Of a stretch of 64,000 nt of DNA, positions 7,022-58,729 are shown piece by piece. The stretch is from Sminthopsis crassicaudata (taxonomy: Eukaryota). A program made the translations under genes and the position numbers. Every line of letters begins with the position of its first letter. Position 1 is the first letter of the stretch. The notes beneath the pieces are model-generated. The model saw only the letters and a list, made by a program, of their open reading frames with translations, ran no database searches and was not told the DNA's origin. The DNA lies in the NCBI RefSeq assembly GCF_048593235.1, contig NC_133622.1:244222055-244286054 (forward strand), given 5' to 3'.

Positions 7022-7122
7022 ATGGCTGAGCAGAATCACAGCACTGTGACAGAGTTCATTCTCATTGGCTTCTCTGATCGTCCGAACCTGGGAGTTCTTC
7101 TCTTCCTGGTGTTCCTCAGTTT
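7022..7122 (+). pseudogene. Truncated olfactory receptor (OR9I-like) 5' fragment, [33 protein letters not shown]
   Basis: ATG at 7022 after a pyrimidine tract/AG acceptor (7004-7005). 101 bp identical to 13569-13669, then replaced by an L1 T-rich tail. The OR does not resume. Confidence 0.9.
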
Positions 7123-12700: not shown

Positions 12701-13669
12701 TTTAGAATCATGCAGAACTTCCGGAGTTAGAATGGATCTCAAATGTAATCTGATTCAATGCTTATTTCAATGCTTATCTAAACAGGGATATCCTCTTAGC
12801 TAGTCTTTTACCATTTAATTTAGAGAAAACTAGTAATGGGGCATTCACTATTTCTCAAGGCAGCTCAGGAGCATCATAATTTTTGAAACCTTTTTCTTAA
12901 AAGGAATTGAAATCTTACTCTCTTTCATTTCTATACATTGCTCTAAGACTTGTCTTCTAGAGGAAAATGGATGCCCCCTCTCTGCAAATTCATGTTCCTT
13001 TCTACCACACTATCAAACAGGGATCAACTATTTTAATATGGTGCATATTTTGCCTCATAATTCCTTTCTGATTTTTCAACCTGAATGCTCCACTACCGGA
13101 ACCACATTTCCTGACTTAGTCCCTCAGATTTTTGAGCACTAAATGTAAACTGTATTGGTAGAGTAGTTAGAAGAGCAGGTCTGTCCTCAGGAAGATCTGA
13201 GTTCAAATCCAGCTTCTTACTCTAGCTGACCCTGGGGAAGCCATTTAATTTCTGGTTGCTTAAGAATCCTCATTTGTAAGCTGAGGTTAATAATAGCACC
13301 TATCTTTTAGAGTTGGTGAGAGGATCAAATGAGATAATTATAAGTACTTAGCATAGTGCCTGGTACAAAATAAGTGTGCTATAAATATTAATTGTAATCA
13401 TAGATACTTGTTGACCATACTTAGGGTGAGAGGAAATAATTACCCTTTCCTTAAAGTGCTCCTTAAGTCCTCACTGAGTTTCCTTCAGAGTGTGATTGAT
13501 TGTCATGGTATGCCAGATCTGGGGATTTTAATGCCATTTTTCTCCTTCACAGGCAAAAAGTGGAGCAAATGGCTGAGCAGAATCACAGCACTGTGACAGA
13601 GTTCATTCTCATTGGCTTCTCTGATCGTCCGAACCTGGGAGTTCTTCTCTTCCTGGTGTTCCTCAGTTT
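9765..13669 (+). repeat. Tandem segmental duplication, copy B
   Basis: Paralogous to 3340-7122. Carries extra sequence at about 11650-12650. Confidence 0.85.
12260..12299. repeat. (TG)n microsatellite
   Basis: tgtgtgtgta tgtgtgtgta tgtgtgtgtg tgtgtgtgt. Confidence 0.95.
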
Positions 13670-14496
13670 CTATCTCATCACCGTCCTGGGCAATATGGGC
13701 ATGGTCCTGCTGATTTACTTGGATAACCATCTCCATGTACTTCTTCTTGAGTCACCTCTCTCTCTTGGATGCCTGCTACTCTTCCGTCATTATTCCTCAG
13801 ATATTGATCACTCTGGTTACTGGCAGGACGAGTGTCTCCTATAACTCTTGTGCTACTCAGTTCTTCTTTTTCACAGTCTGTGCTGGAACTGAATGTTTTC
13901 TGCTTTCAGTGATGGCCTATGACCGTTACGTTGCCATTAGGAATCCTCTCCTGTACACAACAGCCATGACACTAGGAACCCGTTGGGGATTGGTGGCCGG
14001 GGCTTATGCTGGTGGCGTATCAGGAGCCATCCTTCGCACAGCTTGCACATTCACACTTTCCTTCTGTGGGCCTAACAAGATCAACTTCTTCTTCTGTGAT
14101 CTGCCACCTCTGCTGCAGCTTTCATGCAGTGATACCACTACCAGCCAAATTCTGATTCTCTTCTTTGGCAACTTTGTGATCTTGGCCAATGCCCTCATGA
14201 TTTTGGTATCCTATTTGTTCATCATCAGGGCCATTCTACATATAAAGTCAGTCGGAGGTAAAGTCAAGACCTTTTCCACCTGTGCCTCCCACATCACAGC
14301 TGTGATTCTCTTCTTTGGGACCCTTACATTCATGTATATGCGTAGCAACTCAAATAAATCACTTGAAGAGGACAAGGTGGTGTCTGTCTTCTATACTGTG
14401 GTCATCCCCATGCTGAACCCTTTCATCTACAGCCTGAGGAATAAGGAGGTGAAAGCTGCCTTCAGAAAAGTCATGAATAGAACCCAGATCTTTTAG
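13569..14496 (+). pseudogene. OR9I1: OR9I1-like olfactory receptor, frameshifted
   Basis: Frame 1 [12 protein letters not shown]...LGN...DNHL (13569-13733) and frame 2 MYFFLSHLS...MAYDRYVAI...FSTCASH...PMLNPFIYSLRN (13735-14496). Only 1 nt separates L and M where HTP (9 nt) is expected, so 8 bp are deleted. Segments such as [31 protein letters not shown] and KSLEEDKVVSVFYTVVIPMLNP match my recall of human OR9I1. Confidence 0.85.
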
Positions 14497-22056: not shown

Positions 22057-22286
22057 ATGGAGGAGAAACCCATCACCATGCTGTGTTTGCTGCTCTTTGC
22101 CCTGATCCCACGCCCCTCTATGTCCAGTGCTGTCCAATCTCCCTGCCAACTACCTGCCCCTAGTGCCACTGAACAGCTCTCTACTGAGGGGGATGTGCTC
22201 ATTGGAGCTGTCACCCCCTTACATGCCAAGCTTGTCCGGCAGAAGGTGACCTTTCTCCAGCCTCCAGAGCAGCCACCATGCCAACA
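22057..22286 (+). CDS. Class C GPCR exon 1 (signal peptide, start of Venus flytrap)
   Basis: M(EEKPIT)MLCLLLFALIP...EGDVLIGAVTPLH...PPCQ. The second ATG at 22078 has Kozak-like accATG. Donor gtaagt at 22287. Confidence 0.85.
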
Positions 22287-25200
22287 GTAAGTATTGGCCT
22301 TTATTCCTGGGGATGGATAAAAGGAGAGAGGCAAGCATGCTCTAAGTGATGGGGTGGGGAGCATATCTGGGAAGATTGAGCCATGGTCCTTCCATACCCT
22401 TTTTGCCAAGGTTGGTCAGTCTGAATAGGTAGAGCTGGACCCCTTGTAGATCTTTTAAGGTAGTGAGTANNNNNNNNNNNNNNNNNNNNNNNNNNNNNNN
22501 NNNNNNNNNNNNNNNNNNNNNNNNNNNNNNNNNNNNNNNNNNNNNNNNNNNNNNNNNNNNNNNNNNNNNNNNNNNNNNNNNNNNNNNNNNNNNNNNNNNN
22601 NNNNNNNNNNNNNNNNNNNNNNNNNNNNNNNNNNNNNNNNNNNNNNNNNNNNNNNNNNNNNNNNNNNNNNNNNNNNNNNNNNNNNNNNNNNNNNNNNNNN
22701 NNNNNNNNNNNNNNNNNNNNNNNNNNNNNNNNNNNNNNNNNNNNNNNNNNNNNNNNNNNNNNNNNNNNNNNNNNNNNNNNNNNNNNNNNNNNNNNNNNNN
22801 NNNNNNNNNNNNNNNNNNNNNNNNNNNNNNNNNNNNNNNNNNNNNNNNNNNNNNNNNNNNNNNNNNNNNNNNNNNNNNNNNNNNNNNNNNNNNNNNNNNN
22901 NNNNNNNNNNNNNNNNNNNNNNNNNNNNNNNNNNNNNNNNNNNNNNNNNNNNNNNNNNNNNNNNNNNNNNNNNNNNNNNNNNNNNNNNNNNNNNNNNNNN
23001 NNNNNNNNNNNNNNNNNNNNNNNNNNNNNNNNNNNNNNNNNNNNNNNNNNNNNNNNNNNNNNNNNNNNNNNNNNNNNNNNNNNNNNNNNNNNNNNNNNNN
23101 NNNNNNNNNNNNNNNNNNNNNNNNNNNNNNNNNNNNNNNNNNNNNNNNNNNNNNNNNNNNNNNNNNNNNNNNNNNNNNNNNNNNNNNNNNNNNNNNNNNN
23201 NNNNNNNNNNNNNNNNNNNNNNNNNNNNNNNNNNNNNNNNNNNNNNNNNNNNNNNNNNNNNNNNNNNNNNNNNNNNNNNNNNNNNNNNNNNNNNNNNNNN
23301 NNNNNNNNNNNNNNNNNNNNNNNNNNNNNNNNNNNNNNNNNNNNNNNNNNNNNNNNNNNNNNNNNNNNNNNNNNNNNNNNNNNNNNNNNNNNNNNNNNNN
23401 NNNNNNNNAGAGATGTAGAGAGGAGGAGAGAGAGAGGAGAGAGAGAGAGTGAGAGAGCTGATTGGATGGGATGCTAATAAAATTAGTATAAATGTAATAT
23501 GTGAACATGGGGTTTAAGAAAGGGAAACTGCCCCTACTCTTTGTTAAAGATTTTCTAATCTGAGGCTGGCACTTAGAATCTCTGGCTCATAGTAACTCAA
23601 TAAGAGTTAGAGGGACCCCAATGAGCTATCCTATTCTCTGCCCCCCCACATAATCAACACTCCCTTGTACAACACTGTACAAGAATATTCTTTGCTTGAC
23701 CACTTCCTGTGATGAGGAAATAAACACGTTTACTAGCAGTCAGCTCCATTTTTAGACAGTTCTAGTTATTAGAGACTTCATTATCATGTGTGCTCTAGTC
23801 TGCCTCCCTGTAGCTTCTATTCATCAGATGCAGTACTGTTTTTTGGGCCCAAGCAGAAGAGCTCCAAAACCTTTTCTATTTTGTGTCTGTTCACATATCG
23901 GAAGACAATTATCTTCTCCCTAGCACCCCCAAACAGAACAAGGCAAACAAACAGCAACCGCCTTCTGGCCCTTCCCCTTGTTTTCTTTTCTCCAAAACAA
24001 ATTTCCTGGGTTTCCTTAGGTAGTATGTCCTCCTCTTTCTGGACAGACACAATGACCTTCCTGAAGTGGGACATCCAAAATCCTAGAATTCGATTCAAAT
24101 GAACATTTAAGTCTTTTGGACCTGAAAGGAGGCTGAGTGGATACTGATTTCAACCTCTTCCTAAATGATAATTCCTATAAAAAGCAAGAAAGCTCGATAG
24201 TTCAGTGAATAGACTACTGAGCCTCCAGGATAGAAGGCTGAATTCAAATCTGATCTAAGACACAGAGTAGTCATTCAACCTCTTGTTGTCTAATTCACTG
24301 GAGAAGGACATGGCAAACCACTTTAGAAGCTTTGCCAGGAAAACCCTATACAAGTCACAGAGTCAGACCTGATGCAGCCCTACCAGGTATCGAACCAGCT
24401 TTTTTTTTTTTTTTTTTTTCCTGAGGCTGGGGTTAAGTGACTTGCCCAGGGTCACACAGCTAGGAAGTGTTAAGTAAACTTTGAACTCGGGTCCTCCTGA
24501 ATTCAAGGCTGGTGCTCTCTCCACTGCGCCACCTAGCTGCCCCTTGTTGAACCAGCTTTTATCAAAATTACTTCAGAGAGAGGAAAACCACTGCTTTCCT
24601 AGGCAGGTCTTGTCATTTTCTATTGGGTCTAATTGTTTGGAATTTTAGATTCTTTTCCACTAAGTCTCTATCTGCCTCCCCTCTACATTTTACCTGTGGG
24701 CTTCAATGGGGCCAAGACTAGTGCTTCAGGACAGAGCACAAAAGTCTCTTCCTTTTTATTGTTGCAGCCAAACACTTCAGTTTTTCCCCGTTGCTATGTC
24801 ACATTGTTGGCTCACGTTGGTTTTGGAATCATCATAGACTTCAAAGTCCTTCCCCTTTCCAGATATCGCCTTCATTATTTCCTACAGGTTTTTTAAAACA
24901 AAAAAGAATCCTTACCTTTATGTCAGCTGAATTGTATCTTGTTGGATTTGGCCCATTCTTATGATCTGACTGGTTAATAATCCCGTCTCATCATATATTC
25001 ATCTGTGTATCAGTAGCCAATTTAAGAAGTATTACACTAATATTTCCATTCAAGTAATTTGTCAAGAGATGCAACAACTAAAGTATCTCACATTTAAACC
25101 ACAAATGCAGTTGACATATCTTGTCTCTTTTGAGTGGGTATCCTTCTTAGGTTAGGAGAGATGAGTGACTTCTTTTGGGCCACATAGTAAATGTGTGAAG

Positions 25201-28200
25201 TTGGATCTGAACCAAAAGCTTCCTCTCCTGAGCCTCAAATTATATTCACTTAATTTAGAAATCCCCCGGTCCAGATATTATTAACCTGGGGAAAGGGGGA
25301 GAGGGAGTTGTCTATGAATTTGCATAGAAAAAAAAATCTCATTTTTAATCTGACTTTTGGTTTCCTCTGTAATCCTATCTATTTGTTTTATACATTTAGA
25401 ACCATTATTGTGAAAAGGCCTCTGATGATGTTTAATTCTGTCTTTTTTATGATGAGGAAACTGAGACTCAGGGAGAGGGAGGGAATAACCATTGTATCAC
25501 CAAGACTATGTCCAGCTCATGGGGAAGGAGAGAACTTTCCAAAATTTTATTGTTATCCAAGGCTGTGGCTACTTTGAGTCTGCTGTATTTTGTTTCTTCC
25601 TCAAGGTTCAAAGCTAGATTTTTCCTGGATGCTCTGGGCATGCTATTTGCTGTGGAAGAGGCAAATAGAGACCCCAACTTCCTGCCCAATGTGACAGTGG
25701 GATTCCAGCTCTATGACTCCTGTGTGTCTGGAACCCGGGCTCTTGGGAGCACTCTTGGTCTCCTGTCTGGACAGCTCCTCCCAACACCCAACTTTGATTG
25801 CCACCCCCAGCATCGACTCCTGGGAATCATAGGTGGGATGACGTCCCCGGAGTCGGAGGCCATGGCTGAACTGCTCTCTGTTTACCAAGTCTCTCAAGTG
25901 AGTAATATACCTAGAGACATAAGTAGAGAATTCATAGGTAGAAAGTGGTGCTTGCTCTAGTAGTTTCTTCTCTTCTCCAAGACTAAAAGCCCTTCTTTGT
26001 TCCTAAAAACCCAGAGTCATTCCTACTCACAGTTTGGTATGATATACTCCATGATATAGTGGATGGATGGTCACATAATGTGACTTGAAGAGTCCCAGGA
26101 AAAAACTTTGTGCTGGGTTTTCAATGATTCCTGACATTTTACTATTAGAAATTCATTTATTTTGATTCCAAACTCTTAAAATGAAAATACTCCATAAAAG
26201 AATACCTAACAATTTACTAAAAACAATAATTTACTTTTAGATAATACTTTCAGATTTACCAAGTGTTTTCCTTACAAAACTTTTGTGAGCTAAGTAAGGC
26301 AAGGGAAATGAATCTCATTTTACGAGTATATAAACAAAAAGCTCAGAATGTTTGTATGACTTGCTCAGTGTCCACAGTGGGTTTTTTTAGACTTCAAGCC
26401 ACTTGGCTTTCAACTTTATCACTAAGCTGCCATGGGCAAAATAACCATTTAACATCACTCAGCCTCACTTTTACATCTCTAAAATAGGTATAGCAATGGC
26501 AAGTATTTCACAGGATTGTTGTGAAGGTAAAATGAGATAACATGAACAGAATGCTTTAAAATCTTAAATCACTATATACAANNNNNNNNNNNNNNNNNNN
26601 NNNNNNNNNNNNNNNNNNNNNNNNNNNNNNNNNNNNNNNNNNNNNNNNNNNNNNNNNNNNNNNNNNNNNNNNNNNNNNNNNNNNNNNNNNNNNNNNNNNN
26701 NNNNNNNNNNNNNNNNNNNNNNNNNNNNNTGAGGTCAGATTAGAACTCAGGTCCTCCTGACTTCAGGTCTGATGCTTTATCCACTGTGCTATCTAGCTGT
26801 CCCAATAGTATATTATATTTATACATAATATATAATATGATAGAAATTTACTATATTTATATTATATTTAATCACATCAATATTTTATTTAATTATTAAT
26901 ATATTTAATATTATATTATATTTCATGTTGTATTTATTAATAATTATATTAATGTCAAATAATATCAATCTATTATATTTATATTATAATTATTAATAAT
27001 TATATTGATGACAAATAATATCAATATATTATATTTATATTATATTTAACTACATCAATATTTTATTTAATATATTTTATTAAAATATTTAATAATTTAA
27101 TATTATATTATATTTCATGTTGTATTTATTCATAATTATATTAATGTCAAATAATAGCAATTTATATTATATTTAACTACATCAACATTTTATTTAATAT
27201 TATATTCTATTAATGCATTTAATAATTTAATATTACATTACATTTAATGTTGTATTTATTAATAATTAAATTATATCATTATAAAATCAAATAAAAAATT
27301 TTGAGTTAATTTTAGAGCAGATAGCACATGGGCCTCTTGTTTCCAGGTTCAGTATTTCTTTATACCATATCAGCATTAGGCTTATAAAGCTTCATTAAAG
27401 AATAGTGAATTAATTTTGTCCTTGAGAATTTTTGAATCTTTTGCAATGATGCTAGGATGTTGCAGAGGCTGTAATTCCCAGAATGCCCCACAATATAGTG
27501 AGTTGGATTGGGAATATGAACTTGGTAGAAGTTGGCTCTGGAGAATAGCTCATGGCAAGGATTTGACAATTAGCTATATACACTCTTAGGGATAAGAGCC
27601 AGGAGGAAGCTGAGGGATAGGCCGATCCAACTCCCTTATTTTTCAGAACAGAGAGCTGTTATAATTTCCCAAGGTCACATGGGTAGTAAATAGGAAAATT
27701 GAGCTTCAAGTCCATATGCTAGACTCCAAATTCAGGGTTTTCTCACTACTTCACCAAGACCTCTCCATGCTAGGGATATTCAGATGACCTTAGAGTGTCT
27801 TCACATACTCAGTGATCTCTAATGACTTCTTATTACTTCTACAATAAAGTTCATGTTCTTTTCTTCTATTTAATTTTTAAATCCTTTTACATCCTGGACC
27901 TAAGCCACCTTTAAATCAGTCAATCAAAAGACATTAATAAGCACCAGATATGTTCCAAGAGTTGGAATACAGTACAAAGACTGAAAAAATCTGTATTCTC
28001 AGGGGGGATCTCTATATCTATCTCTAAATCTGTATCTATATCTGTATCTGTATCTCTATCTATCTATCTATGAGTATATACATAATAAATACAAAGAGGA
28101 CAAATGCAAATGAATATAAACTAGTTACATTATATAGAACTGCTAGGCGGTACAGTGGAAAGAGTACTGTGCTTGGAGCCAGAAAGACTCATCTTCCTGA

Positions 28201-31200
28201 GTTCAAATCCAGACTCAAACAAATGCTTACTGTGTAATTTTGGGCAAATCACTTAACCATTTTTGCCGCAGTCTTCTCATCTGTAAAATGAGATGGAGAA
28301 GGAAATGGCAAACTGTAAAGGGCTAGAACTGAGCAATGCACTTGGATAATGAAGACGTTTAGTGATCCTGACTCCAGCTGATTTCTGGGAAGACAGAGTT
28401 CCAGCAGCAAACCATTCCACTATCTTTGGGTCATGGAGAGTTGGACATAATTGAGATGATACAACAACAAAATAACATATATNNNNNNNNNNNNNNNNNN
28501 NNNNNNNNNNNNNNNNNNNNNNNNNNNNNNNNNNNNNNNNNNNNNNNNNNNNNNNNNNNNNNNNNNNNNNNNNNNNNNNNNNNNNNNNNNNNNNNNNNNN
28601 NNNNNNNNNNNNNNNNNNNNNNNNGAGACCAGATTTGAACTCGGGTCCTCCTGAATTCAAGGCTGGTGCTCTATCCACTGCGCCACCTAGCTGCCCTTTT
28701 TCAGTCATAGTTTCTTAAAACTCTTATTTACCCTGTAGGAGATGCTGCATCCAGGAGGGAGCATAGTGAAGTAGACAGAGTTGGGGGGCAGGAAGAATCA
28801 GGAAATGGCTCTAAGTTCTATCAGCAGAAAATAGAATTGACAATACCCTTGTGTTTATCCCTAGAACTCAACACAAGGCCTGGAACATATTAGATGCTTA
28901 GTAAATGTTTATTGGCTGATTGAGTATAGATTTAAAAGCAAATTCTCCCTGGAAAGTGTAAGCTGAGCCACAGAGAGAAATCTTGTAAAGCTATTGAACC
29001 CATGGAAGAACAGTAGGGAATTCCTAATAAGAGGAAGGACACGGGGACCCCACACGCCGGGAGGAACAGATTTTCCTTGGCCACATGTGTTCCTCACTAC
29101 CATTGTACTCAAGGTGATCACCCTTCCCACTGGTACTGTGTGTATTTGTGAGATTTGTGACCCAGATTTTGTATTAGGAATACTTGGCAGCTACTGTTCT
29201 TACCGTGCTTAGTAAAGCTTACCAGCTTGGTAAAGGCCTTGAGCTAATATATAATTAGCTACTGGCTGACTGACTATTGAAGGTGAATTTACTGGCCTGG
29301 CCTTGTGAGCTCTAACTTTAGGAAGGCAGACCCATGGGTCTGTGGTCCCAAGTTACAAACTTGAGATCTCAATGATAATTCCAGAGTGGGGGAGAGAGAA
29401 CATGACAAGGCATTCACAGAAGAGTTGTTTAAATAATAATGCCTTCCATTTTTATTTTTATTTTAGGACTTTTAGGTTTGCAAATTTCTCTTTTCCCAAC
29501 CTAGTAGTTAGGTGGTACATATATTATTACTATTGCTGCTGCTGCTATTATTACCACTATTATTATTACTAACTTTAGGCACATAGTCCACATTATCTCA
29601 TTTAAGTCACAATATTTCTATAGGATGGATTCTATTATTATCCTCATTTTAGGAATGGGGAAACTGAGGCTGAGAAAAGGTTAAGTAACTTGCCCATGAT
29701 CACCCAGCCATGTGATTTTTGACAGGATTTGGGTACTAGCTTTCCTGACTCCAAATTCAGAACTCTATTCTCTCTGCCATCTTGCTCCCTCCAGCTCTAG
29801 TTTATGGATGAAACTTTGTGAAGAATGGTGAAAATAGAGCAAGGTTTAAATTTCCAGGCAGCTACTTGGAGGCCTCAGGAAATATGAAGCCATATGCTGT
29901 TTTTTTTTTCTGGCCAGGAACATTTGGGCCTTTTTCTTTCCCCAGATAAGTCATGGATCTCAACATCCCCAATTTTCTGACCACCAGCGGTTCCCCTCCT
30001 TCCTTCGCACAGTCCCCAGCAGAGTGCACCAACCTCAGGCCTTGGCTAAAATACTTCTCTACTTCAACTGGACCTGGGTGGGCCTGGTGGGCTCAGATAG
30101 CGGTGCCTTTGAGTGGCTGGACCAGGAATTCCGGAAGGAGGTTGGAAAGAACGGCGGCTGTGTGAGCTTCTCGAAGAGAATTGATGGCCACATCAATAAT
30201 GTGGGTGATGTGGCTGATGCCATCTGGAATTCTACTGCCAAGGTAATCATCTGTGACTGCTACCACATCCACTTTGTTCTCCTTGCCAAGGCCCTCCAGG
30301 AAAAGAGTATGACCAACAGAATCTGGCTCATGTCCACTTCTTTTTTACTGGATGCCTCAGTGTTGAGCAGAGAAGCCAGAGAGATGCTAAATGGGAGCCT
30401 GTCTCTGGGGATACACTCTGGACCAATACCTGGCTTCAAGCACTTCCTGTCCACTCTGCGTCCAGCCATGTACCCAGAAAACCACCTGGTAAAGTTGTTC
30501 TGGCAAGAGCTGTTGGGCTGCACCTGGCCTGGGCCAAAGTCCGTTGACAATCAAGCAGGAAGTGTTGTCCAAAATTGCACAGGGCTGGAGCAGCTGACTC
30601 AGCTCCATCTATCTGTACTGAATCTGGATGACTTGACCGCTACGTATCAAGCCTACCTGGCAGCCAAAGCCTTCCTGGTGGCCTATCAGAATCTGAGGGC
30701 CTGCTCTCCTAGAGAAGGACCATTTACTGGTAGCAATTGCACCAGGACAGAAGATGCCAGACCATGGCAGGTGAGACAGAGACGAGGAATCCATGTCCTA
30801 CGTCCTGCTCTCTCTAGCATGGGATAAGTACTCATGGTTATTGAATAGGATGAAGGAGACTATGAGTAGGAGGGATAACAAAGGAGGTTAGGAGGGCTAA
30901 ACATTTCTTGGGTAAATTTGTAAAATAAACGGGTTGGACTAGATGGCCTCTCAGTTTTTAGCTCTATTCCAGGATCTATGATGCTGTGAATGGAGGACCA
31001 AGAAGACGTGGGAGAAATTAGGAATAAAAATTCTGGAAAAGAGCCAATAACTGTTGCCATAAAAGGCAAAACTATAATAATCCCACAAATGGGCCTAGAG
31101 ATACCTTTTCTCCCACATTTAAGTATCTCAACCAATCAGAGAACCAGTCAAGGAAAGGGGACATCTCAAAACATCCCCAAGAGACTTCAGATAGAAAGTT

Positions 31201-34200
31201 CAGTGATAGTGGTAAGAACAAAGGGATTCTCAGGCAGGCGAGAGACTCAGTCTTCTGGGGTGTTCAGCTTCTTTAATCTTTAGGTAGAACGAGTAATGAG
31301 GAAGTACAAGGAAGAATTAATGGGACCACGCTGGAGAAGTCCACTTGTCATGGCCAAAAATATGTGAGAAGGTTTGCTATAAAGGCAGTGCAAGGTTTAT
31401 TATAAAGGCAGATCCGTGGACCCTTTCTCTGACCTCTTCTTGTCTTCCTACTTGTGTTTTTGTCTCAGTTTTTGCACTATCTAAAGGCTGTCTGCTTCAC
31501 TACTCGAGCCCAGGAAGAGATCTTCTTTACCCAGGATGGAGAGATCCCAGCGATTTTTGATATAGTGAATATTTACCTTGCTCTTAACCATACTTTGCAG
31601 ACTGTCAAGGTTGGACACTTAGACTTCAGGGAGCCTCCAGGGCAAGAGCTGGTGATAAATAGCAGTACTATCATTTGGGCTGAGGGTCTTGGAAAGGTGA
31701 GAACCAAAATCCATTCTCTTCTGCTGCTCTCCTTCAATAATAATACCAACTAATCAGGGGAAGGAAGGAATTCTGGGACTCAGTCATTACATCCTAGCTC
31801 CAACTATGTACCACTGGAATTTCCCCCATTAGTGAGAACTCAGAAAAGTACAAATTTGGGAACTCCTGAAAATGACTTATTTTACAAATGTTGTTAGGTT
31901 ACCTCTAAACTTTACTCAGTTCTCTCTCTCTTTTTTTTTCTGTCTGTCTTTGAGTAGGTCCCTCTTTCAGTTTGCAGCAAAACATGTCCTTTGGGAACCC
32001 GGAAGTCAGCTATTCAGGGGCAACCAAGCTGCTGCTACCAGTGTCTTCACTGCCCCAAAGGAGAAATAGCCTATATTTCAGGTAAGAAAGACTGGAGAAT
32101 GGTGGGACCATTTAGACTCAAGCAACTAGTGGAGCTAGATTCCGGGTGAGAGCATTATGGAACTAGTTGGTTGGAAGTGAGAAGAGTCAGATGGGAGAAA
32201 TGGGAAAGAATAATACTAGTAATTTCTGATGGGAAGAAAACAGAAAACATGAAGATATCATTCACAGAATTTCACAGTTGGAAGAACCGTAGTGGATTTC
32301 AAGTCTGGTCCCTACTTAAGAATTTTTTTTTTTAAATAACATATCTGAAAAGTCATCATTCAGTCATTTCTTGAAGGATTCCTTCTGGCAAGAGTTAAAA
32401 ATCTAGTTTAAAATGAGCCAAAGAACTTGGAAGACATGGTTCAAATCCAGGTTTTATTTTGAACTAGCATAATAGAAAGTAGAGACACACGGCTAAAATA
32501 CAGCATGTTATGATCAGGATCCAAAAAGATTTCAGTAGGTTTGAATGGTAGATTGGAACTGTCAAGTCAAAAAACATTTATGAAGTCCATACTATGTGCC
32601 AGGTACTGTTAATAAGGGAAAATGATTTAAAATTTAAAAAGCATTTACTATGTGCTGGGCATTGGGCTAAGTGGGTGCTATTATCCTCCCCATTTTACAG
32701 ATAAAGAAACTGAGGCAAACAGAGGTTGTGACTTACCCAGGGTCACAATAGATGTCAAATTTGAACTCAAATGCTTGTGACTCCAGCACCAGCTCTCTAT
32801 AGTAGTCTCAAATACAAAACTTGAGTCTAAAGATCAATTGAACAAATGCAGGATAGGACAGAGAATGTTAGAAGTCAATTCATGTTATATATATATAAAA
32901 AAAAGACATAACTTTAGTGTACCACGTGAGCAAAAGGCAGCAAGCATATTAAGTGGAGTCTGTATGTCAGGTATGGTGACCATGAGCACAGTGTCATGGG
33001 ATAACTAGCAAGCGAATGGGAATTAAGGTTGCTTTTACAGAAGTTTTGATAACACGGGAAGCTGGGGGTAGTTGTGAATCCTTGTGATCCTTGCTGCTAG
33101 GGAAGGCGAAGCTAGGGAATTGCTTGAGTTCAGGAGTTCAGAGAGCTGCAAATAGGATCAAGGTGTCCAGATCAACTGATGTCAGCCCCAATATGACAAA
33201 TCTCTAGAAATGAAGCCCTTCTGGTTACCTAAGGAGAAAAAAACTGGCCCCATTGAGAAAAATGGAGCAGGGTAAAGCTTCTATGCTGATCAGTATTGGA
33301 TTAGATCAATAAGGTTGTATTTTCAACCTGGACATTGAAGAGATTAAATTAAATTTCCTAAAATATTTAAAATTTCTGGTGAGGGGCAGCAAGGTGGCGC
33401 AGTGGATAGAGCACCAGCCCTGAATTCAGGAGGACCTGATACTTAACACTTCCTAGCTGTGTGACCCTGGGCAAGTCACTTAACCCCACTCTCAGAAAAA
33501 GAAAAAAAAATTTCTGGTGAACTGGATATAATAAGATTCAACAATATCATATGGCAGTCATCACAATGTGATGAGAATATATACTGCTTTCATATCAATA
33601 CAGTGACAAGAGGAAAGGAAGATTTACTCGAGGAAGGAAAAGTTCTCCCAGTGTGAAAAATCTCTCTCTTCTTACTTTCTTTGTCTGATTTATCACCCCA
33701 AATCTGTTTCAGACAGCGCCAGTTGCTTCAAGTGCCCAGAGGACCAATGGCCAAACAATGAGAAGGATCGGTGCATCCCCAAGATTCTTGACTTTCTCTC
33801 CTACACGGAGCCCCTGGGCATGGCTCTAGCCTTCTGTACAGCCTTTCTCTTCCTCCTTTCCCTGACCATCCTCGGCACATTCATACACCATCACCACACT
33901 CCCATAGTCAGAGCCAACAACCACAGGCTAAGTTACATCCTTCTCTGTTCCCTGGCGCTCTGCTTCCTCTGCCCATTCATGTTCATTGGCCCCCCAGTCC
34001 CCCTGACCTGTGCCCTGCGCCAGGCAGCCTTTGGGATTTTCTTCACAGTCTGTGTGTGTGCCACTCTGGCCAAGACCATCATTGTTGTGTCTGCCTTCAG
34101 GGCCACCAGACCAGATGCCAGACTGAAGCGGGCAGGACTCAATCTCCCCAGTGCCATCCTCATTGGCTTCTCCTTGGTCCAAGTGGTTCTGTGTATGTTC

Positions 34201-34617
34201 TGGGTCATTGGCTGGCCTCCGGTGCCCGTGAACTCGGCAGAAGCAGGACCCACGGTCACCATGCTGTGTGGCTCAGGCTCCTCAGAGTTTTTCTACACCA
34301 TGCTGGGCTACCTGGGCTTCCTGGCCCTGGTCAGTCTGGTGGTGGCCTTCCTGGCCCGTCGACTGCCCGACACTTTCAACGAAGCCAAGCACATCACCCT
34401 CAGCATGTTGGTCTTCTCCTGTGTCTGGATCTCCTTCATCCCAGCCCACCTGAGTGCTCAGGGCAAGGACACTGTGGCTGTGGAGATCTTTGCTATTTTA
34501 GCATCCGGGGCAGGCCTGATGGGCTGTCTGTTCTTCCCTAAGTGCTACATCATCCTGCTACGGCCTGAGAAGAACACAAGGGACCAAATGAGGGGCAAGC
34601 AGCATTTCAAGAAATGA
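22057..34617 (+). CDS. Class C GPCR, V2R/CaSR-like; six-exon model join(22057-22286,25606-25897,29946-30770,31469-31696,31958-32081,33713-34617), 867 aa
   Basis: Exons of 230+292+825+228+124+905 = 2604 nt give 868 codons with no internal stop. All introns are GT-AG, phases 2,0,0,0,1. Signal peptide, Venus flytrap domain, 9-Cys domain and 7TM with LPDTFNEAK and PKCYIILLRPEKN are present. Confidence 0.92.
22470..23408. other. Assembly gap (N run). Other gaps: 26582-26730, 28483-28624, 36796-37166, 40533-40664, 48130-48282, 48632-48781, 58408-58560
   Basis: Runs of n. None overlaps a predicted coding exon. Confidence 0.99.
24400..24543 (-). mobile_element. WSINE1-like SINE in intron 1
   Basis: T-tail then ctgaggctggggttaagtgacttgcccagg...ccactgcgccacctagctgcccc. 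TSD gaaccagctttt (24392-24403/24549-24560). Confidence 0.9.
24760..25080 (-). mobile_element. Old CR1/L3 fragment
   Basis: gtcacattgttggctcacgttgg; ttatgtcagctgaattgtatcttgttggatttggccca; ccattcaagtaatttgtcaagagatg resemble antisense CR1 RT sequence. Confidence 0.45.
25606..25897 (+). CDS. Class C GPCR exon 2
   Basis: FAVEEANRDPNFLPNVTVGFQLYDSC is the class C motif FAIEEINxxxxLLPNxTLGYxIYDSC. Acceptor tttcttcctcaag, donor gtgagt. Confidence 0.93.
26805..27300. repeat. AT-rich degenerate minisatellite (about 3 units) in intron 2
   Basis: Blocks tttatattatatttaa(tc/ct)acatcaa near 26855, 27035 and 27161, and tattatattatatttcatgttgtatttatt, recur. Confidence 0.75.
28625..28696 (-). mobile_element. 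WSINE1-like SINE, partial (abuts gap)
   Basis: gagaccagatttgaactcgggtcctcctgaattcaaggctggtgctctatccactgcgccacctagctgccc. Confidence 0.85.
29946..30770 (+). CDS. Class C GPCR exon 3
   Basis: ISHGS...FPSFLRTVP...YFNWTWVG...GPIPGFKHFL...FWQELLGC...ARPWQ. Acceptor ttttctttccccag, donor gtgaga. Confidence 0.93.
31469..31696 (+). CDS. Class C GPCR exon 4
   Basis: FLHYLKAVCF...FFTQDGEIPAIFDIVN...VKVG...INSSTIIW. 228 bp, acceptor tttttgtctcag, donor gtgaga. Confidence 0.92.
31958..32081 (+). CDS. Class C GPCR exon 5 (cysteine-rich domain)
   Basis: VPLSVCSKTCPLGTRKSAIQGQPSCCYQCLHCPKGEIAYIS. 124 bp, phase 1, donor gtaaga. Confidence 0.95.
33061..33343 (+). pseudogene. Degenerate 7SL (SRP RNA) retrocopy in intron 5
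   Basis: Colinear matches to 7SL: ttgcttgagttcaggagttc (TCGCTTGAGTCCAGGAGTTC), ggttacctaaggag (GGTTGCCTAAGGAG), aaatggagcagg (AAACGGAGCAGG), tgctgatcagta (TGCTGATCAGTA), caacctggaca (CAGCCTGGGCA). Confidence 0.8.
33383..33506 (+). mobile_element. WSINE1-like SINE with internal deletion of the B-box
   Basis: 14-bp TSD aaaatttctggtga (33369-33382/33507-33520). Confidence 0.9.
33713..34617 (+). CDS. Class C GPCR exon 6 (end of CRD plus 7TM)
   Basis: DSASCFKCPEDQWPNNEKDRCIPK...TPIVRANNHRLSYILL...LAKT...LGYLGFLA...LPDTFNEAK...VAVEIFAILAS...PKCYIILLRPEKN...FKK*. Confidence 0.96.
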
Positions 34618-37600
34618 AAGCCAAACCAGTCCTTCCATTTTCCTCATCATAGATGGGAGGGAAGATTCTCAGCACTTCCTAGCTCTCTCCAAACTATCTT
34701 TGTGCCATGAAAGGGCCTGTATCTCATCTTGATACCTGGCTATCATTCATACATGCCATAGGTTTTCTCTCCTAAACTGGAATATTTCCCTTTTACTTTT
34801 AAGCCAATCCAAATCTTACCAGTCCTTCGGACCCATTTAAAATATTCCCTTCAATTATGAAGCTTCTGATGACTGTTGTTCAATCATCAATCATTTTTGA
34901 CTCTATGTGACCTGTGGACATTTGTGCACAGGGTTTTCTTAGCAAAGATACAGTAAAGACTTGTTATTTCATTTTCCAGTGTGTTGTCATTTTCACAGAT
35001 GAACAACTGAGGCAAATAGAGCTTGTAACTTTTCTAAGGTCATGCAGTTTAGTAAACATCGGAGGCCACATTTGAACTCAGATCTTGACTTCAGTCTCTG
35101 CACTGGCTGCAGTCTTCCCTGACCATTTAAATTTCCATTGATGACTTCTATACTTTTTATTAGCATCAAATATGGAGCTTAAACATTCGCAGATAGTTGC
35201 ATGTGTTCTAGAACTGCCTATTGGACTAGAAGGTGAACTTCGTAAGAGTAAGCACCAAATCTTATTTCTTCTGTATCCATTTCAGTATTTGGTCGAGAAT
35301 TGAGTATCAGTAAATGTGCAATAGATCCCTGTTTATTGATTATGTTGTACTTGTAACACACTCTTCTCATGTATGTGGACACCAGGAAAACTATTCCAGT
35401 TTTAGCTATCTTTTTGGTTTTTACTTGCTCAAAACTATAGATCATGAACCTCCAGGGATGCTTGTACTTTTACTAGTCAACCAGGGAACATATAAATAAA
35501 GTTCAACATAAAGGGATTTATTTAGTGAAATGGTATCGTATAGTATAGAGAAGAAGAAATTGAATACTACTCCCTGAACTTGGGGCACATTCACTCTAAA
35601 TATGCCCACGTGTTTTATGACCCACATTTGAAGGAGTAACTCATGTTCCTGATAATATATTTGTACTGTTCACAGAGGACTTGCTCCTCCCTAGGAATGG
35701 TATCTCCATTTTTATTGTATCCATAGCAGTTACAGTTGGATATAATTCTCCTGGTGTTTCTTAGTCTCTTTGTGAGGGACATTCTAGATACTTGTAGCAA
35801 CAACCCTATGAATAGTGAAGGTGTGCCTAGGTCAGAGGAATAATCATTTTCTCCTTTTGCTTGCTGTTATCCTCTATAATGTTTCATGCTATAACCTGGG
35901 CCTCCGTGGATCAATTGTCAAACTAGGATGTACTTTGGAGCTATCTGTCTATGAATGTTTCCTCTCTTTTGTTTTATGAGCTTGCTTTTTTGGACTCCCA
36001 GTAAGCTTTGTTTTCCTTATCTGATCTAATTAAATTATTACTATGATTTCCTGCCTTGGGAATGTGCCCTCAATATAGTAATTAAGACTTTGTCTGGGGT
36101 AGAAAAGTATGTAGATTTGTGATGATGGCCAGTTCTCACTATGAATCAATCCCTCTCTCTTTAGTCAGTAAAACAAAGACTAGTAATCCCCAGGATCAAG
36201 CTGACTGCATCTTTTATCCAAGGGTTCTTACTGAGAGTTTGCTGGGGCAGTCACTGATGGTGGTCACTGATTAAGATGAGTTCCACGTTGCATTGTTTGG
36301 AAGTTTTGGACAATGCTGTAGTCACTGACTAGGGATAAAATTGTCTTGTGCAGAGTGATGTCTAGTTTCCCTTTTCATATTTTGCAGGAGGCTTTGGGGA
36401 GAACTAAAGTATAGTCTCGTTATTAGATTTTCATTGATTAGATGTATAATTTCATTACACATTTCACTCAGTTCATCATGTAGGTGCTGAAGAAATTAAT
36501 AGTTAAATAAATATAATATATTTATAATATAATAGATATTACATATCTATTATATTAAATAATTGTAGATGTAATATCAATATAATAGTTAAATAAATAA
36601 AATAGTTAAATCAGTTAAAGGATGGTTGTCAGAGAGAAGGTGGAGGAGACGTTTCTTGCCTACATGAGAAAATTCCTCTGACATCTCATTACCCAGTAGT
36701 CTGTCTGGTAATGAAGTTCTCTATCCTTAATAAGAATTGTCCTAGAATGCTTGATGTAATTAATTGTTGATTCTTTCCATCTAGGTGCATTTTTCNNNNN
36801 NNNNNNNNNNNNNNNNNNNNNNNNNNNNNNNNNNNNNNNNNNNNNNNNNNNNNNNNNNNNNNNNNNNNNNNNNNNNNNNNNNNNNNNNNNNNNNNNNNNN
36901 NNNNNNNNNNNNNNNNNNNNNNNNNNNNNNNNNNNNNNNNNNNNNNNNNNNNNNNNNNNNNNNNNNNNNNNNNNNNNNNNNNNNNNNNNNNNNNNNNNNN
37001 NNNNNNNNNNNNNNNNNNNNNNNNNNNNNNNNNNNNNNNNNNNNNNNNNNNNNNNNNNNNNNNNNNNNNNNNNNNNNNNNNNNNNNNNNNNNNNNNNNNN
37101 NNNNNNNNNNNNNNNNNNNNNNNNNNNNNNNNNNNNNNNNNNNNNNNNNNNNNNNNNNNNNNNNNNTGAAAGACATGAAAAATATCAGTGGAGAAGTAAA
37201 AATCATGCTTACTACAGTGATCAAAGTATTGATGTAAAATGTGAGAGACAATTTGGCAAGATTCAGCTCAGATCCAATGGCAAGAGCACTTTATAGCATA
37301 AGGAAAACTGCAAAAATTGTGTTTTTTTTCTCTTCTCTCTTTAACCCTTACTCAGTAGGGAATGTATACATCGTAAAGGCTGATAATTAGTTACCTGTGA
37401 ATTCACATGGAATAGAAAGTATAGTGGAAGAATAATTAAGGGATACTAATAGCAACTTTTAAGAGATAAAGAAACATTAAAATTCAAAGTGGGGAAGACT
37501 GATCATAAAATGTATGATAATAGTCTCAAGGTTTATTGCCCATTTATTTGAAAGGAGAGTTGTCCTTGACTTGTATCAGGGAGCTTTTAGGAGCATGACA

Positions 37601-39218: not shown

Positions 39219-40169
39219 CTAGAGAGAGCTTTTCTTGGAGAAGACATTTCTTGTGAGTACTTTTGCCAGGGCCCCTTTCATGTCACTATTCCTTAGGGTG
39301 TAAATCACAGGGTTGAGAAGAGGAGTACCTAGTGTATATACCAGTGAAAGCAACTGGTCCTGCTTGGGGGAATAGCTCGAGTTTGGCCGAAGGTACATGA
39401 ACATGCAGCAACCGTACTGTAAGAGGACCACCATGAGGTGGGAGGAGCAGGTAGAGAAAGCCCGGCGGCGGCCTGATGTAGAATGGATGCCCAATATGGC
39501 AATCGTAATGAGGGCATAGGAAATAGCAATGAGGAGAAAGGGGAAGGCGATGGCCAGCGTGCCCGCCACCAGCACCGAGAGCTCAGGGAGGCGGCTGTGG
39601 GTGCAGGTCAGTCGCATCACTGGGGGAACATCACAGAAGAAGTGCTCAATGCTTCTGGAACGGCAAAAAGGCAAGCAGAAGATGAAGACCACCAGCTGTA
39701 GGGATAGGATAAAACCGATGGCTATGGAGGCCACCACCAGGTTGACACAGAACTTCTGAGTCATGATCAAGGGGTACTGTAGGGGATAGCAGATTGCCAC
39801 GTAGCGGTCATAGGCCATAACAGCCAATAGGAAGCAGTCAGTGCTACCAAGCCCAATGAAAAATAGCATCTGGGTAGCACAACCCAGAAATGTAATGGCT
39901 TTATGCCTCTTCACGGTGTTCACCAGGATGTGGGGAACCACTGTTGCAGTGTACCAGATCTCCACAATAGACAGGCTGCCTAGGAGGTAGTACATTGGTG
40001 TGTGGAGACGGGCTTCCATCTGAATGGCAGCCACTATAAGGATATTTCCTGTGAGGATCGTGGTGTAGACTAGACTGATCCCCAAGAAAACCAAGACCTG
40101 CAGCTCTGGCTGGGTAGGATAAGCTAGGAATACAAACTCTGTTGATAATGTTTGGTTCACCCAAGTCAT
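39219..40169 (-). CDS. OR10W1: Olfactory receptor, OR10W1-like, intact (316 aa)
   Basis: NQT glycosylation site, [83 protein letters not shown] and SYSPKQD match my recall of human OR10W1. Confidence 0.9.
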
Positions 40170-40664
40170 TGAGGTGCTGAGGCTCTCTGTATGGCAAGAG
40201 ATAAAAGGATAGAAGAAAGAATCAATCTATGAATGCATAGGGATGTCTTGCATATCGTCACAGTATGTCTGCTCTAATCAGAGCTTGGGATTGTGTGAGA
40301 GAGTATGGAAGAATGGAAAAAATGCTAGATTTGGATGCAAGACTTCCGGCTCAAATCCTGCCTATAAGATGCTGGTTTTATGATCCCAAGCCAATCATCT
40401 AGCATCTCTGAGCCTGTTTCTCCATCTGGATAAGTGGGATAATAACACTTTAACTGCCTACATGATAAGATTGTGATAAAAAAATCAAACATTATTTTTT
40501 TTTAAACTTTAAAGCATGATATATGATTTAAANNNNNNNNNNNNNNNNNNNNNNNNNNNNNNNNNNNNNNNNNNNNNNNNNNNNNNNNNNNNNNNNNNNN
40601 NNNNNNNNNNNNNNNNNNNNNNNNNNNNNNNNNNNNNNNNNNNNNNNNNNNNNNNNNNNNNNNN

Positions 40665-48110: not shown

Positions 48111-48880
48111 GTGAGGGAAAGGGAGGGGANNNNNNNNNNNNNNNNNNNNNNNNNNNNNNNNNNNNNNNNNNNNNNNNNNNNNNNNNNNNNNNNNNNNNNN
48201 NNNNNNNNNNNNNNNNNNNNNNNNNNNNNNNNNNNNNNNNNNNNNNNNNNNNNNNNNNNNNNNNNNNNNNNNNNNNNNNNNNAAAAGTAGTTCCATTTTA
48301 AGCTTGGTTCAAATTGGAATTATCTTCTAAATATATATTAATATGCTTATTTCATATTTCTTTGGGGATATACTAAAGAAGGAAGCATATAAATTATTAT
48401 CCCAAATGGATGGGCCAAGAGAATTATGAATTATTGTTGGGATATCTATGCTTCTAAATAGGAAGGCAGAACTCAAGTAGTACATATGAGATAGCTGGTG
48501 CTTTCATTCCCTGTGCCATTAGTGAGCTGGCATGGAAAGCTACAAGTGCCACTTGGTGGCTTCTATAGGTATAACACCTTGAGCAGTGGCTGGAAGGGAT
48601 ATCATTTAATGCAGCGCATATGGGATTATCANNNNNNNNNNNNNNNNNNNNNNNNNNNNNNNNNNNNNNNNNNNNNNNNNNNNNNNNNNNNNNNNNNNNN
48701 NNNNNNNNNNNNNNNNNNNNNNNNNNNNNNNNNNNNNNNNNNNNNNNNNNNNNNNNNNNNNNNNNNNNNNNNNNNNNNNNNTTAAAAATTTTGTTCAGAG
48801 GCTTCATTTACAAAGACAAATGAATTGACTACATCTGAATAGTTAGGCAATTTTTTTCATCTTGCTCTTTATCTTGCTGA

Positions 48881-51739: not shown

Positions 51740-52702
51740 TCATGGAGTTTCAGAGGTTCCTTTGCGGCTCACAGATTTTTTGAGAGCACCTTTGACATCC
51801 TTGTTCCGTAGTGTGTAAATGAGAGGGTTTAGCAAGGGAGTAACAAAAGTATAGACCAAGGCAATCTGTCGATCCTCATCCTCTGAGGTGCTGGACCTGG
51901 GGCGTAAATAGACAAGGCTACAGCAGCCATATTGCAGCAGCACCACAGTGAGATGGGAAGAGCAAGTGGAGAAGGCTCGGCGGCGGCCCTCAGCTGAGCG
52001 GATACGCAAGATGGTGGTGGTGATGAAGACGTAAGAGATGCAGATGAGCAGGAATGGGACAGTCAGAACAAGGATTCCTACCACATAGAGGACAGCCTGA
52101 TGAATTTTGGTATCAGCACAGGCCAGGCGTAGGACAGGTGGCACATCACAAAGGAAGTGGTTGATCTCCCGGTGGTGACCACAGAAGGGCAGGGTGAAAA
52201 TCAGTGCTGTCAGCTGGAGGGAGAGAAAGACAGCCAGACCCAGGGAGCCGACCACCATCTGGGTACAAAGCTTCTGAGTCATGATGAGGCTGTAGTGCAA
52301 AGGATGACAAATGGCCACATAGCGATCATACGCCATGACAGCCAATAGAAAACAGTCAGTACTGCCAAGGGTGACAAAAAAGAACATCTGAGCCCCACAG
52401 CCAGCCAATGGGATGGGTTTCTGGGCTCCAACGATGTTGGAGAGCATCAATGGTACCACAGTAGTGGTGTAACAGATCTCCAGGAAGGAGAGGTTGGACA
52501 GGAAGAAGTACATGGGGGTACGGAGGGAAGTATGGGTGCATACAACCCAGATGATAGCAGTGTTCCCACAGAGTATCATCACATAGAGGAGGAAAAAGAG
52601 AAGGAAGAGAAGGGCCTGGATTCGGGGGGAAGTAGTGAACATCCGGAATACAAATTCAGTAGGGCCAGATTGATTGAGAAGGATAAAGTTGGGTAGAACC
52701 AT
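51740..52702 (-). CDS. OR10Q1: Olfactory receptor, OR10Q1-like, intact (320 aa)
   Basis: NQS site, [82 protein letters not shown]. Very close to my recall of human OR10Q1. Confidence 0.93.
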   Translation of the reverse strand: MVLPNFILLNQSGPTEFVFRMFTTSPRIQALLFLLFFLLYVMILCGNTAIIWVVCTHTSLRTPMYFFLSNLSFLEICYTTTVVPLMLSNIVGAQKPIPLAGCGAQMFFFVTLGSTDCFLLAVMAYDRYVAICHPLHYSLIMTQKLCTQMVVGSLGLAVFLSLQLTALIFTLPFCGHHREINHFLCDVPPVLRLACADTKIHQAVLYVVGILVLTVPFLLICISYVFITTTILRIRSAEGRRRAFSTCSSHLTVVLLQYGCCSLVYLRPRSSTSEDEDRQIALVYTFVTPLLNPLIYTLRNKDVKGALKKSVSRKGTSETP

Positions 52703-58370: not shown

Positions 58371-58729
58371 ACTCTGTTAAGTAGCTGTTGTTAAATTTCT
58401 GAGGATANNNNNNNNNNNNNNNNNNNNNNNNNNNNNNNNNNNNNNNNNNNNNNNNNNNNNNNNNNNNNNNNNNNNNNNNNNNNNNNNNNNNNNNNNNNNN
58501 NNNNNNNNNNNNNNNNNNNNNNNNNNNNNNNNNNNNNNNNNNNNNNNNNNNNNNNNNNNNAAAGAGTTTTAAATCTATCACCACTTTAATTTAACAGATA
58601 AGAAAACTGAGAAAGAAAGTGGCACAGTGGATGGAATGTTTGATTTAACAATCAGGAAGACCTGAATTTGATTTTGCCTTAGACTTTTACTAGACTAACT
58701 AATCTCTCCAAATCTGTTTCTTCATTTCT

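Follow-up and report, generated by a model that had tools for sequence, protein, structure and literature searches.

A class C receptor gene in an olfactory receptor cluster

We analysed a window of 64,000 nucleotides from the genome of the fat-tailed dunnart Sminthopsis crassicaudata (contig NC_133622.1, positions 244,222,055 to 244,286,054 of the forward strand; coordinates given without a contig or locus name are those of the window). It contains a gene for a class C G protein-coupled receptor with a Venus flytrap domain (VFT), a nine-cysteine domain (cysteine-rich domain, CRD), a seven-transmembrane domain (7TM) and a short tail, and the exon layout and phylogenetic placement are those of a tetrapod-type vomeronasal type 2 receptor (t-V2R, within the V2Rs). 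When the protein was searched against the whole window using tblastn, the matches were the six exons of this gene alone, and the remaining coding content consists of three olfactory receptor (OR) loci. An earlier note, made from the DNA letters, had described exactly this situation, OR genes as neighbours and no second class C gene inside the window. The gene is located at CM109186.1:244,244,111-244,256,671 and is composed as follows.

22057-22286, plus strand: exon 1, with the start codon, the signal peptide and the start of the VFT; 3' end in phase 2, donor gtaagt
25606-25897, plus strand: exon 2, 292 nucleotides, VFT lobe 1; Pfam ANF_receptor
29946-30770, plus strand: exon 3, 825 nucleotides, main ligand-binding part of the VFT; Pfam ANF_receptor, 2.3e-19
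31469-31696, plus strand: exon 4, 228 nucleotides, end of the VFT; size canonical for V2R/CaSR
31958-32081, plus strand: exon 5, 124 nucleotides, CRD cysteines 1-6
33713-34617, plus strand: exon 6, 905 nucleotides with the stop codon; last three CRD cysteines, 7TM and short C-terminal tail
22470-23408: run of 939 N in intron 1
26582-26729 and 28483-28624: two runs of N in intron 2, both inside 26582-28624

The model rebuilt from the window sequence has a coding sequence of 2604 nucleotides, which encodes 867 amino acids followed by a stop, with 0 internal stops. All introns are of the GT...AG type and their phases are consistent. Pfam recognised ANF_receptor (PF01094) on exons 2 and 3 and 7tm_3 (PF00003) on exon 6 (6.9e-71), and the entry of the identical protein P0154 also carries NCD3G (PF07562). 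The rebuilt model and Pfam agree with the intact six-exon frame of 867 amino acids, with canonical splice sites and nine CRD cysteines, that had been read from the letters before; the cysteines are residues 531, 535, 550, 551, 554, 557, 571, 574 and 587. Exon 1 aligned to residues 24-62 of CaSR. Exon 3 opens with ISHGSQ, a motif of the V2R lineage to which the gene belongs and which we call lineage X; its marsupial copies are termed a (the window gene) and b. The best match among solved structures was CaSR (E=5.5e-171), collinear over residues 39-860, and the class C motifs of the 7TM domain are visible in this alignment, namely the Cys/Lys of TM3, NEAK, WISFIPA with the TM6 tryptophan, and PKxY of TM7 (here PKCY). 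The C-terminal tail extends 18 residues past the TM7 motif PKCYIILL and is short, as in V2Rs. The six-exon layout with a 228-nucleotide exon 4 and a 124-nucleotide exon 5 was also found at four other loci, those of the dunnart paralog b (L002), Tupaia (L003), Lacerta (L004) and Sarcophilus (L005).

The NCBI prediction P0154 ('extracellular calcium-sensing receptor-like', Sminthopsis crassicaudata) is 100 % identical to our model over 867 amino acids, and the gene is already annotated automatically in RefSeq, under a misleading name. The frame continues from exon 1 through exon 3 over the two introns with gaps, and the protein shows no indel relative to CaSR at the corresponding junctions (77/78 and 174/175). 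The gap-free loci L002 and L005 display the same exons 1-3 and no further coding exon between them.

Homologues and phylogenetic position

An exhaustive phmmer search with exon 6 recovered one close representative, opossum Vmn2r616 (83 % identity), followed by lacertids (61-63 %), a camel fragment (67 %), caecilians (56-58 %) and the bulk of V2Rs (50-55 %). In full-length searches, marsupial proteins were 78-84 % identical and fell into two sets. Placental proteins reached 53-66 % (Tupaia, Otolemur, Cavia and Loxodonta, together with models labelled LOW QUALITY from Erethizon, Trichechus, Dugong and Hipposideros), squamate proteins 52-54 % (Lacerta, Podarcis, Zootoca, Pogona and Eublepharis) and amphibian proteins at most 46 %, and ordinary marsupial, monotreme and rodent V2Rs were only 35-40 % identical. 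The full-length searches returned no mouse, rat or human protein of lineage X, and none of the mouse or rat proteins obtained exceeded 37 % identity. They also did not find copy a among the proteins of Sarcophilus. The placental models look intact in tree shrew, galago, guinea pig and elephant and are damaged in several others.

The maximum likelihood tree on which we rely was built from 60 sequences and 788 columns under LG+C20+F+G4 and rooted on GPRC6A-like proteins; true CaSR was represented by P0296, verified against PDB CaSR at 1905 bits. From the root, CaSR branched first, then a hagfish sequence, then fish and ray V2Rs, and finally the t-V2R clade (100/100). Inside t-V2R, lineage X was monophyletic (100/100), with a squamate branch next to placentals plus marsupials, as in the species tree. 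Its sister was a caecilian group (99/97) within a clade of amphibian and lungfish sequences (100/99). Canonical amniote V2Rs, i.e. those of rodents, monotremes and squamates and the marsupial expansions, formed a separate clade (99/96), which contains mouse Vmn2r26 (family A) and excludes lineage X. Pogona and Eublepharis joined the squamate branch of lineage X, and as Eublepharis also has a canonical V2R, both lineages occur in one genome. Forcing all amniote V2Rs into one clade changed the log-likelihood by -68.9 units and was rejected by the approximately unbiased (AU) test (p=8.7e-6). The group tested was named after the tree had been seen, although it is also the one by which the earlier note had proposed to refute its own view. 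Lineage X is present in squamates (gecko, agamid and lacertids), placentals and marsupials, and its split from canonical amniote V2Rs predates the origin of amniotes.

Two marsupial clades were recovered within lineage X. Clade a (99/98) comprised the window gene, Vmn2r616, Vombatus and Trichosurus, and a quick tree added Macrotis, Notamacropus and the a copy of Petaurus. Clade b (98/92) comprised Vmn2r615, Dromiciops, Sminthopsis b and Sarcophilus, to which the quick tree added Petaurus b. American and Australian species are found in both clades, and the duplication is therefore placed before the marsupial crown. A single duplication, later than the marsupial-placental split and earlier than the crown radiation of marsupials, gave rise to both copies. 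A recent marsupial expansion was also considered as the source of the window gene and was rejected because of the a/b split, the tree of 60 sequences and the AU test.

These results bear on several claims of the earlier note. Its view that the gene is not nested in a recent marsupial expansion was supported by the two old paralog clades and the rejected one-clade topology. The affinities lie away from rodent V2Rs, as had been proposed: the non-marsupial relatives are placental, squamate and then amphibian rather than canonical rodent or marsupial V2Rs. The suspected decay in placentals agrees with the LOW QUALITY models and with the mouse, rat and human proteins that did not turn up. The idea of an old surviving lineage stood as far as intactness and age are concerned, but its description as a single-copy therian lineage did not, as the lineage is at least amniote-wide and has two marsupial copies.

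The second dunnart copy and the mosaic of exon 6

The gene had been called solitary in the earlier note, which holds inside the window but not for the genome, as marsupials have two paralog clades. The dunnart paralog, copy b (P0161, 82 % identical), occupies 244,110,847-244,120,024, some 124 kb upstream, outside the window and on the opposite strand. The NCBI model of P0161 (825 amino acids) skips exon 5, and for this reason we considered copy b as a pseudogene. In the DNA, however, this exon is open (L002 15317-15440), has 124 nucleotides and is bounded by AG/GT splice sites. We rejected the pseudogene, and copy b is probably intact, with the NCBI model at fault.

Comparison of the two copies revealed one near-identical tract.

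33707-34619, plus strand: 98.2 % identical to L002 18268-19180 (exon 6 of the paralog)

Exons 1-5 of the two copies are 72-85 % identical; for exon 1, the identity to copy b is 73-74 % (Sminthopsis and Sarcophilus). The synonymous divergence dS between a and b is 0.025 in the 7TM domain versus 0.47 in the VFT. Past both ends of exon 6, the identity between a and b drops to about 0.5 within a few bases, and the flanks of exon 6 in copy b are 0.85-0.90 identical to those of Sarcophilus b. In the tree of exon 6, Sminthopsis b is the sister of the window gene (100/99) and Sarcophilus b joins this pair next (99/99), whereas in the ectodomain tree the window gene falls outside the copy b clade. The simplest reading of this mosaic is that the 7TM exon underwent gene conversion between the dunnart copies after the dunnart and devil lineages had split. 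The conversion tract would end where the two copies cease to be alignable. The direction b to a is suggested, though not proven, by the grouping with Sarcophilus; the 16 residual differences in exon 6 split 8:7 relative to Sarcophilus b. An assembly artefact is an unlikely source of the identity because of these 16 differences and the unique flanks. We also considered recurrent conversion of exon 6 across marsupials, but the pattern is clear in Sminthopsis only and was absent from the paralog pairs of opossum and glider.

Selection and intactness of related loci

We estimated dN/dS by NG86 with bootstrap on exactly mapped codons of five loci, with the following results.

Sminthopsis a versus b: dN/dS 0.31 (95 % confidence interval 0.25-0.40)
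Sminthopsis b versus Sarcophilus b: dN/dS 0.28
Sminthopsis a versus Tupaia: dN/dS 0.19, dS saturated
Sminthopsis a versus Lacerta: dN/dS 0.19, dS saturated

The upper 95 % limits of all estimates were at or below 0.42. Because of these values, an unexceptional branch length and intact a-type models in seven marsupials, copy a itself appears to be under constraint.

Many RefSeq models lack exons 1 and 2, but both are present and open in the DNA of Tupaia, Lacerta and Sarcophilus. The RefSeq/GenBank models of these three species (713-719 amino acids) begin inside exon 2 (L003 8522-10060, L004 8593-10060 and L005 8728-10060). Because both exons were found open upstream, these annotations are evidently truncated at the N-terminus.

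Putative binding pocket

We compared the residues that form the amino-acid site of CaSR with their counterparts in the window protein. In the alignment, T145, S147, S170, D190, Y218 and E297 of CaSR correspond to M155, S157, Q180, R200, A228 and T305, so that five of the six (T145, S170, D190, Y218 and E297) are replaced. The amino-acid signature S-S/T-D-Y-E/D is kept in fish-type V2Rs, GPRC6A and CaSR, and the residues found there in canonical mammalian V2Rs are different again. Across 17 lineage X sequences, from lizard to marsupial, S157, G178, S179, Q180 and Y280 are invariant and T305 is nearly so. At the position of D190, marsupials carry R and the other species S or N, and at that of Y218 marsupials carry A, placentals N and lizards Q. 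Five of the nine pocket columns are invariant, compared with 18 % of VFT columns (p=0.01), although the test is generous as three of the five are adjacent.

From these features we infer a ligand-gated dimeric chemoreceptor with a ligand that may be conserved across species. The product would work as a dimer, serve chemosensation in vomeronasal or olfactory neurons and signal via its 7TM domain, in which the class C motifs are intact. Because the backbone-binding positions S/T170, D190, Y218 and E297 are replaced, mostly by residues invariant in the lineage, the conserved ligand would be bound outside the canonical alpha-amino-acid mode. As for expression, four runs of one study contained 0.43-0.63 of the sequence words of exons 3-6 with their introns, and 0.25-0.51 of those of intron 5, compared with about 0.01-0.04 of those words in 15 other Sminthopsis RNA runs.

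Neighbouring genes and conserved synteny

Apart from the V2R, the following features were found in the window.

39219-40169, minus strand: OR10W1 ortholog, an intact OR of 316 amino acids with Pfam 7tm_4, in convergent orientation 4.6 kb downstream of the V2R
51740-52702, minus strand: intact OR of 320 amino acids, 57 % identical to the OR10W1 ortholog
13569-14496, plus strand: OR locus with a frame shift near 13730; public gene call of 928 nucleotides with a 309-amino-acid product
36796-37166, 40533-40664, 48130-48282, 48632-48781 and 58408-58560: other assembly gaps, all outside the gene

OR names were taken from protein cluster look-ups. All named proteins in the 90 % cluster of the 316-amino-acid dunnart OR bear the name OR10W1; they come from six other marsupials. 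For the OR at 51740-52702 the look-up gave no name, and the label OR10Q of the earlier note is unverified. The OR at 13569-14496 is probably a pseudogene or carries a one-base sequence error. A fragment of 22 codons at 7022-7087 (plus strand), probably a small duplicated piece, matches part of the translation of this locus exactly. The gap at 40533-40664 begins 364 bases past the start codon of the OR10W1 ortholog.

The arrangement around the V2R is shared with other species. A convergent OR of 316 amino acids lies 4.6-6.8 kb downstream of copy a in Sminthopsis, Monodelphis, Vombatus, Petaurus, Trichosurus and Macrotis. In Lacerta agilis (L004 1708-25404) the order is an OR10W1-like gene (plus strand), the lineage X V2R (plus), OR6Q1 (minus) and an OR11L1-like gene (minus), and in Tupaia the lineage X gene is followed by a convergent OR6Q1. 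The OR6Q1 proteins of Tupaia and the lizard are 70 % identical, which is unusually high conservation for an OR. OR10W1, OR6Q1 or both thus adjoin lineage X in the lizard, the tree shrew and six marsupials. A class C gene at the syntenic place in a placental, as the earlier note had envisaged, was seen in Tupaia, with another OR-flanked ortholog in Lacerta. A literature search brought up no paper that ties OR6Q1 or OR10W1 to V2Rs, and neither OR gene is mentioned in the matches listed.

Comparison with known receptors

The opossum genes Vmn2r615 and Vmn2r616 (NP_001093040.1 and relatives) were reportedly catalogued and named by Young and Trask in 2007, and we found no paper in the searchable literature naming Vmn2r616. 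Vmn2r616 is the ortholog of the window gene and Vmn2r615 represents the other paralog type. Together with the 'CaSR-like' models of other marsupials they reach 80-84 % protein identity to the dunnart protein; the exon structure and the convergent downstream OR are common to them and the dunnart gene. They differ in that the dunnart exon 6 has been homogenised with that of its paralog, unlike in the opossum pair. Unlike the full-length dunnart model, most 'CaSR-like' RefSeq models of other marsupials lack exon 1. Compared with CaSR itself, which has a long C-terminal tail, the window protein shares the nine-cysteine CRD and the 7TM motifs but not the tail. CaSR orthology was rejected, as true CaSR lies outside all V2Rs and the site residues are replaced.

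Canonical t-V2Rs, such as mouse family A (e.g. Vmn2r26) and the marsupial, monotreme and squamate expansions of subclade V2RC14, have the same domains, six exons and a short tail, and have also lost the amino-acid signature. They occur in species-specific clusters, however, whereas lineage X has one or two copies inside an OR cluster. V2Rs other than family C are known for species- or clade-specific expansions, with mammalian, frog and squamate clades cleanly apart (PMC3590772). Policarpo et al. 2024 (PMC10869828) recognise the t-V2R subclades V2RC1-14 and place the expansions of mammals and lepidosaurs in C14. Lineage X is probably one of the other V2RC subclades of that study, the text of which does not discuss such a lineage. 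Mouse family D is of the Vmn2r56 type (PMC3170373), and lemur VN2R2 has been described as near family D and as lacking exon 4 (PMC5251345); the lineage X protein of Otolemur has this exon.

Lineage X resembles ancV2R and V2R2 (family C) in its few copies, species-tree orthology and long conservation. Those two genes form a tandem beside PLCH1 and are placed outside both f-V2R and t-V2R (PMC9018814). According to Zhang et al. 2022 (PMC9018814), ancV2R is kept from sharks to frogs and missing from reptiles and mammals. We considered ancV2R as the identity of lineage X and rejected it because of the nesting in t-V2R, from a tree that contained no ancV2R sequence, and the OR10W1/OR6Q1 neighbours. 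The nesting in t-V2R likewise argues against membership in family C (V2R2; Vmn2r1/OlfCc1), which is basal to other V2Rs. The species set of PMC9018814 (anole, mouse) would probably have missed lineage X. The lineage motif HHHTP was absent from the sequences in its supplement, although the text obtained by optical character recognition makes this a weak negative. That lineage X ranks with V2R2 and ancV2R as a third V2R orthogroup of deep conservation, the sole one besides V2R2 kept in amniotes, and that it has stayed within the OR10W1-OR6Q1 block for over 300 My, is a speculation that we find rather doubtful.

We take the OR cluster at human chr11:54.6-59.7 Mb to hold OR10W1 and OR6Q1. The single vomeronasal pseudogene in this cluster is VN2R9P (PMC6744719), which agrees with the earlier note, and by its position only we infer that it is orthologous to lineage X.

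Nature of the window gene and alternative explanations

We consider it likely that the window gene is an intact t-V2R under purifying selection, copy a of the old low-copy lineage X, and that it encodes a chemoreceptor for a ligand bound in a non-amino-acid mode. Several points weigh against this. The gaps sit between exons 1 and 3, and a mis-join there is still conceivable. The constraint on copy a was deduced from dN/dS against the paralog and distant orthologs and not from a-type orthologs. Mouse families B, D and E, V2R2 and ancV2R are absent from our trees, and their exclusion was made by identity levels, published topology and synteny. The type of the four runs rich in words of the gene was only guessed ('RNA?') and intron sequence is present in them too, so that they hint at transcription only indirectly.

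The low copy number and the conservation would also be explained by a physiological, non-chemosensory 'CaSR-like' class C sensor expressed outside the nose. The near 1:1 orthology over more than 300 My at dN/dS 0.2-0.3 would suit such a sensor, as would the RefSeq name and the score against the CaSR structure, which is 574 bits for the window protein versus 484 bits for a canonical mammalian V2R. Moreover, the conserved family C V2R Vmn2r1 has been reported in non-neuronal cells (PMC4316634). We nevertheless regard this role as improbable, as the gene nests in the t-V2R radiation far from true CaSR, the amino-acid-binding residues of CaSR are replaced, the C-terminal tail is short and of the V2R type, the gene sits inside an OR cluster, and lineage X seems damaged in or absent from many placental protein sets. 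The low copy number and conservation, which recall V2R2 and ancV2R (PMC9018814), and the conserved VFT pocket would also be in line with a role comparable to that of family C V2R2, in which the protein is broadly co-expressed with other V2Rs as their co-receptor or partner in dimers and is not a ligand-specific receptor of single neurons. However, the published position of V2R2 is outside f-V2R and t-V2R whereas lineage X lies inside t-V2R. Intact mammalian V2Rs have been listed only for rodents, strepsirrhines, opossum and platypus (PMC11035023), and some reviews list none for tree shrew and elephant, in which the lineage X models look intact, so that the receptor may have few partners there. 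We judge the co-receptor very unlikely.

An open reading frame with recent loss of function, or an assembly chimera formed across the gaps or by collapse of exon 6 with the paralog, was the remaining alternative. The three runs of N between exons 1 and 3, the near-identical exon 6 (98 %) and the copy a not found among Sarcophilus proteins could be taken as its signs. On the other hand, the gene has intact splice sites and phases, its protein aligns collinearly with those of its orthologs, and NCBI arrived at the same protein independently. Exons 1-5 differ from the paralog by 16-28 %, the ectodomain falls outside the copy b clade, exon 6 itself has 16 differences and unique flanks, and dN/dS is well under 1. 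Loss or chimerism can hence hardly be credited, and the intact t-V2R of lineage X, with its inferred chemosensory role, is the reading that we retain.

Significance

The presence of the protein in RefSeq, the kind of receptor and the names of the opossum orthologs are already known. What appears to be absent from the searchable literature is the picture of the lineage as a whole, with conserved OR neighbours, a conserved pocket and an exon-limited conversion. Lineage X is a V2R lineage outside family C that keeps orthology, copy number, pocket signature and OR neighbours from geckos to marsupials, which contrasts with the usual expansions of V2Rs. This makes it a tractable candidate in the search for V2Rs whose ligand is conserved. 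The position of a class C gene inside an OR cluster bears on the regulation of receptor choice, and the lineage offers a positional explanation of why the human OR cluster at 11q12 contains a lone V2R pseudogene. As the dunnart is a laboratory marsupial, expression and knock-out tests would be feasible in this species.

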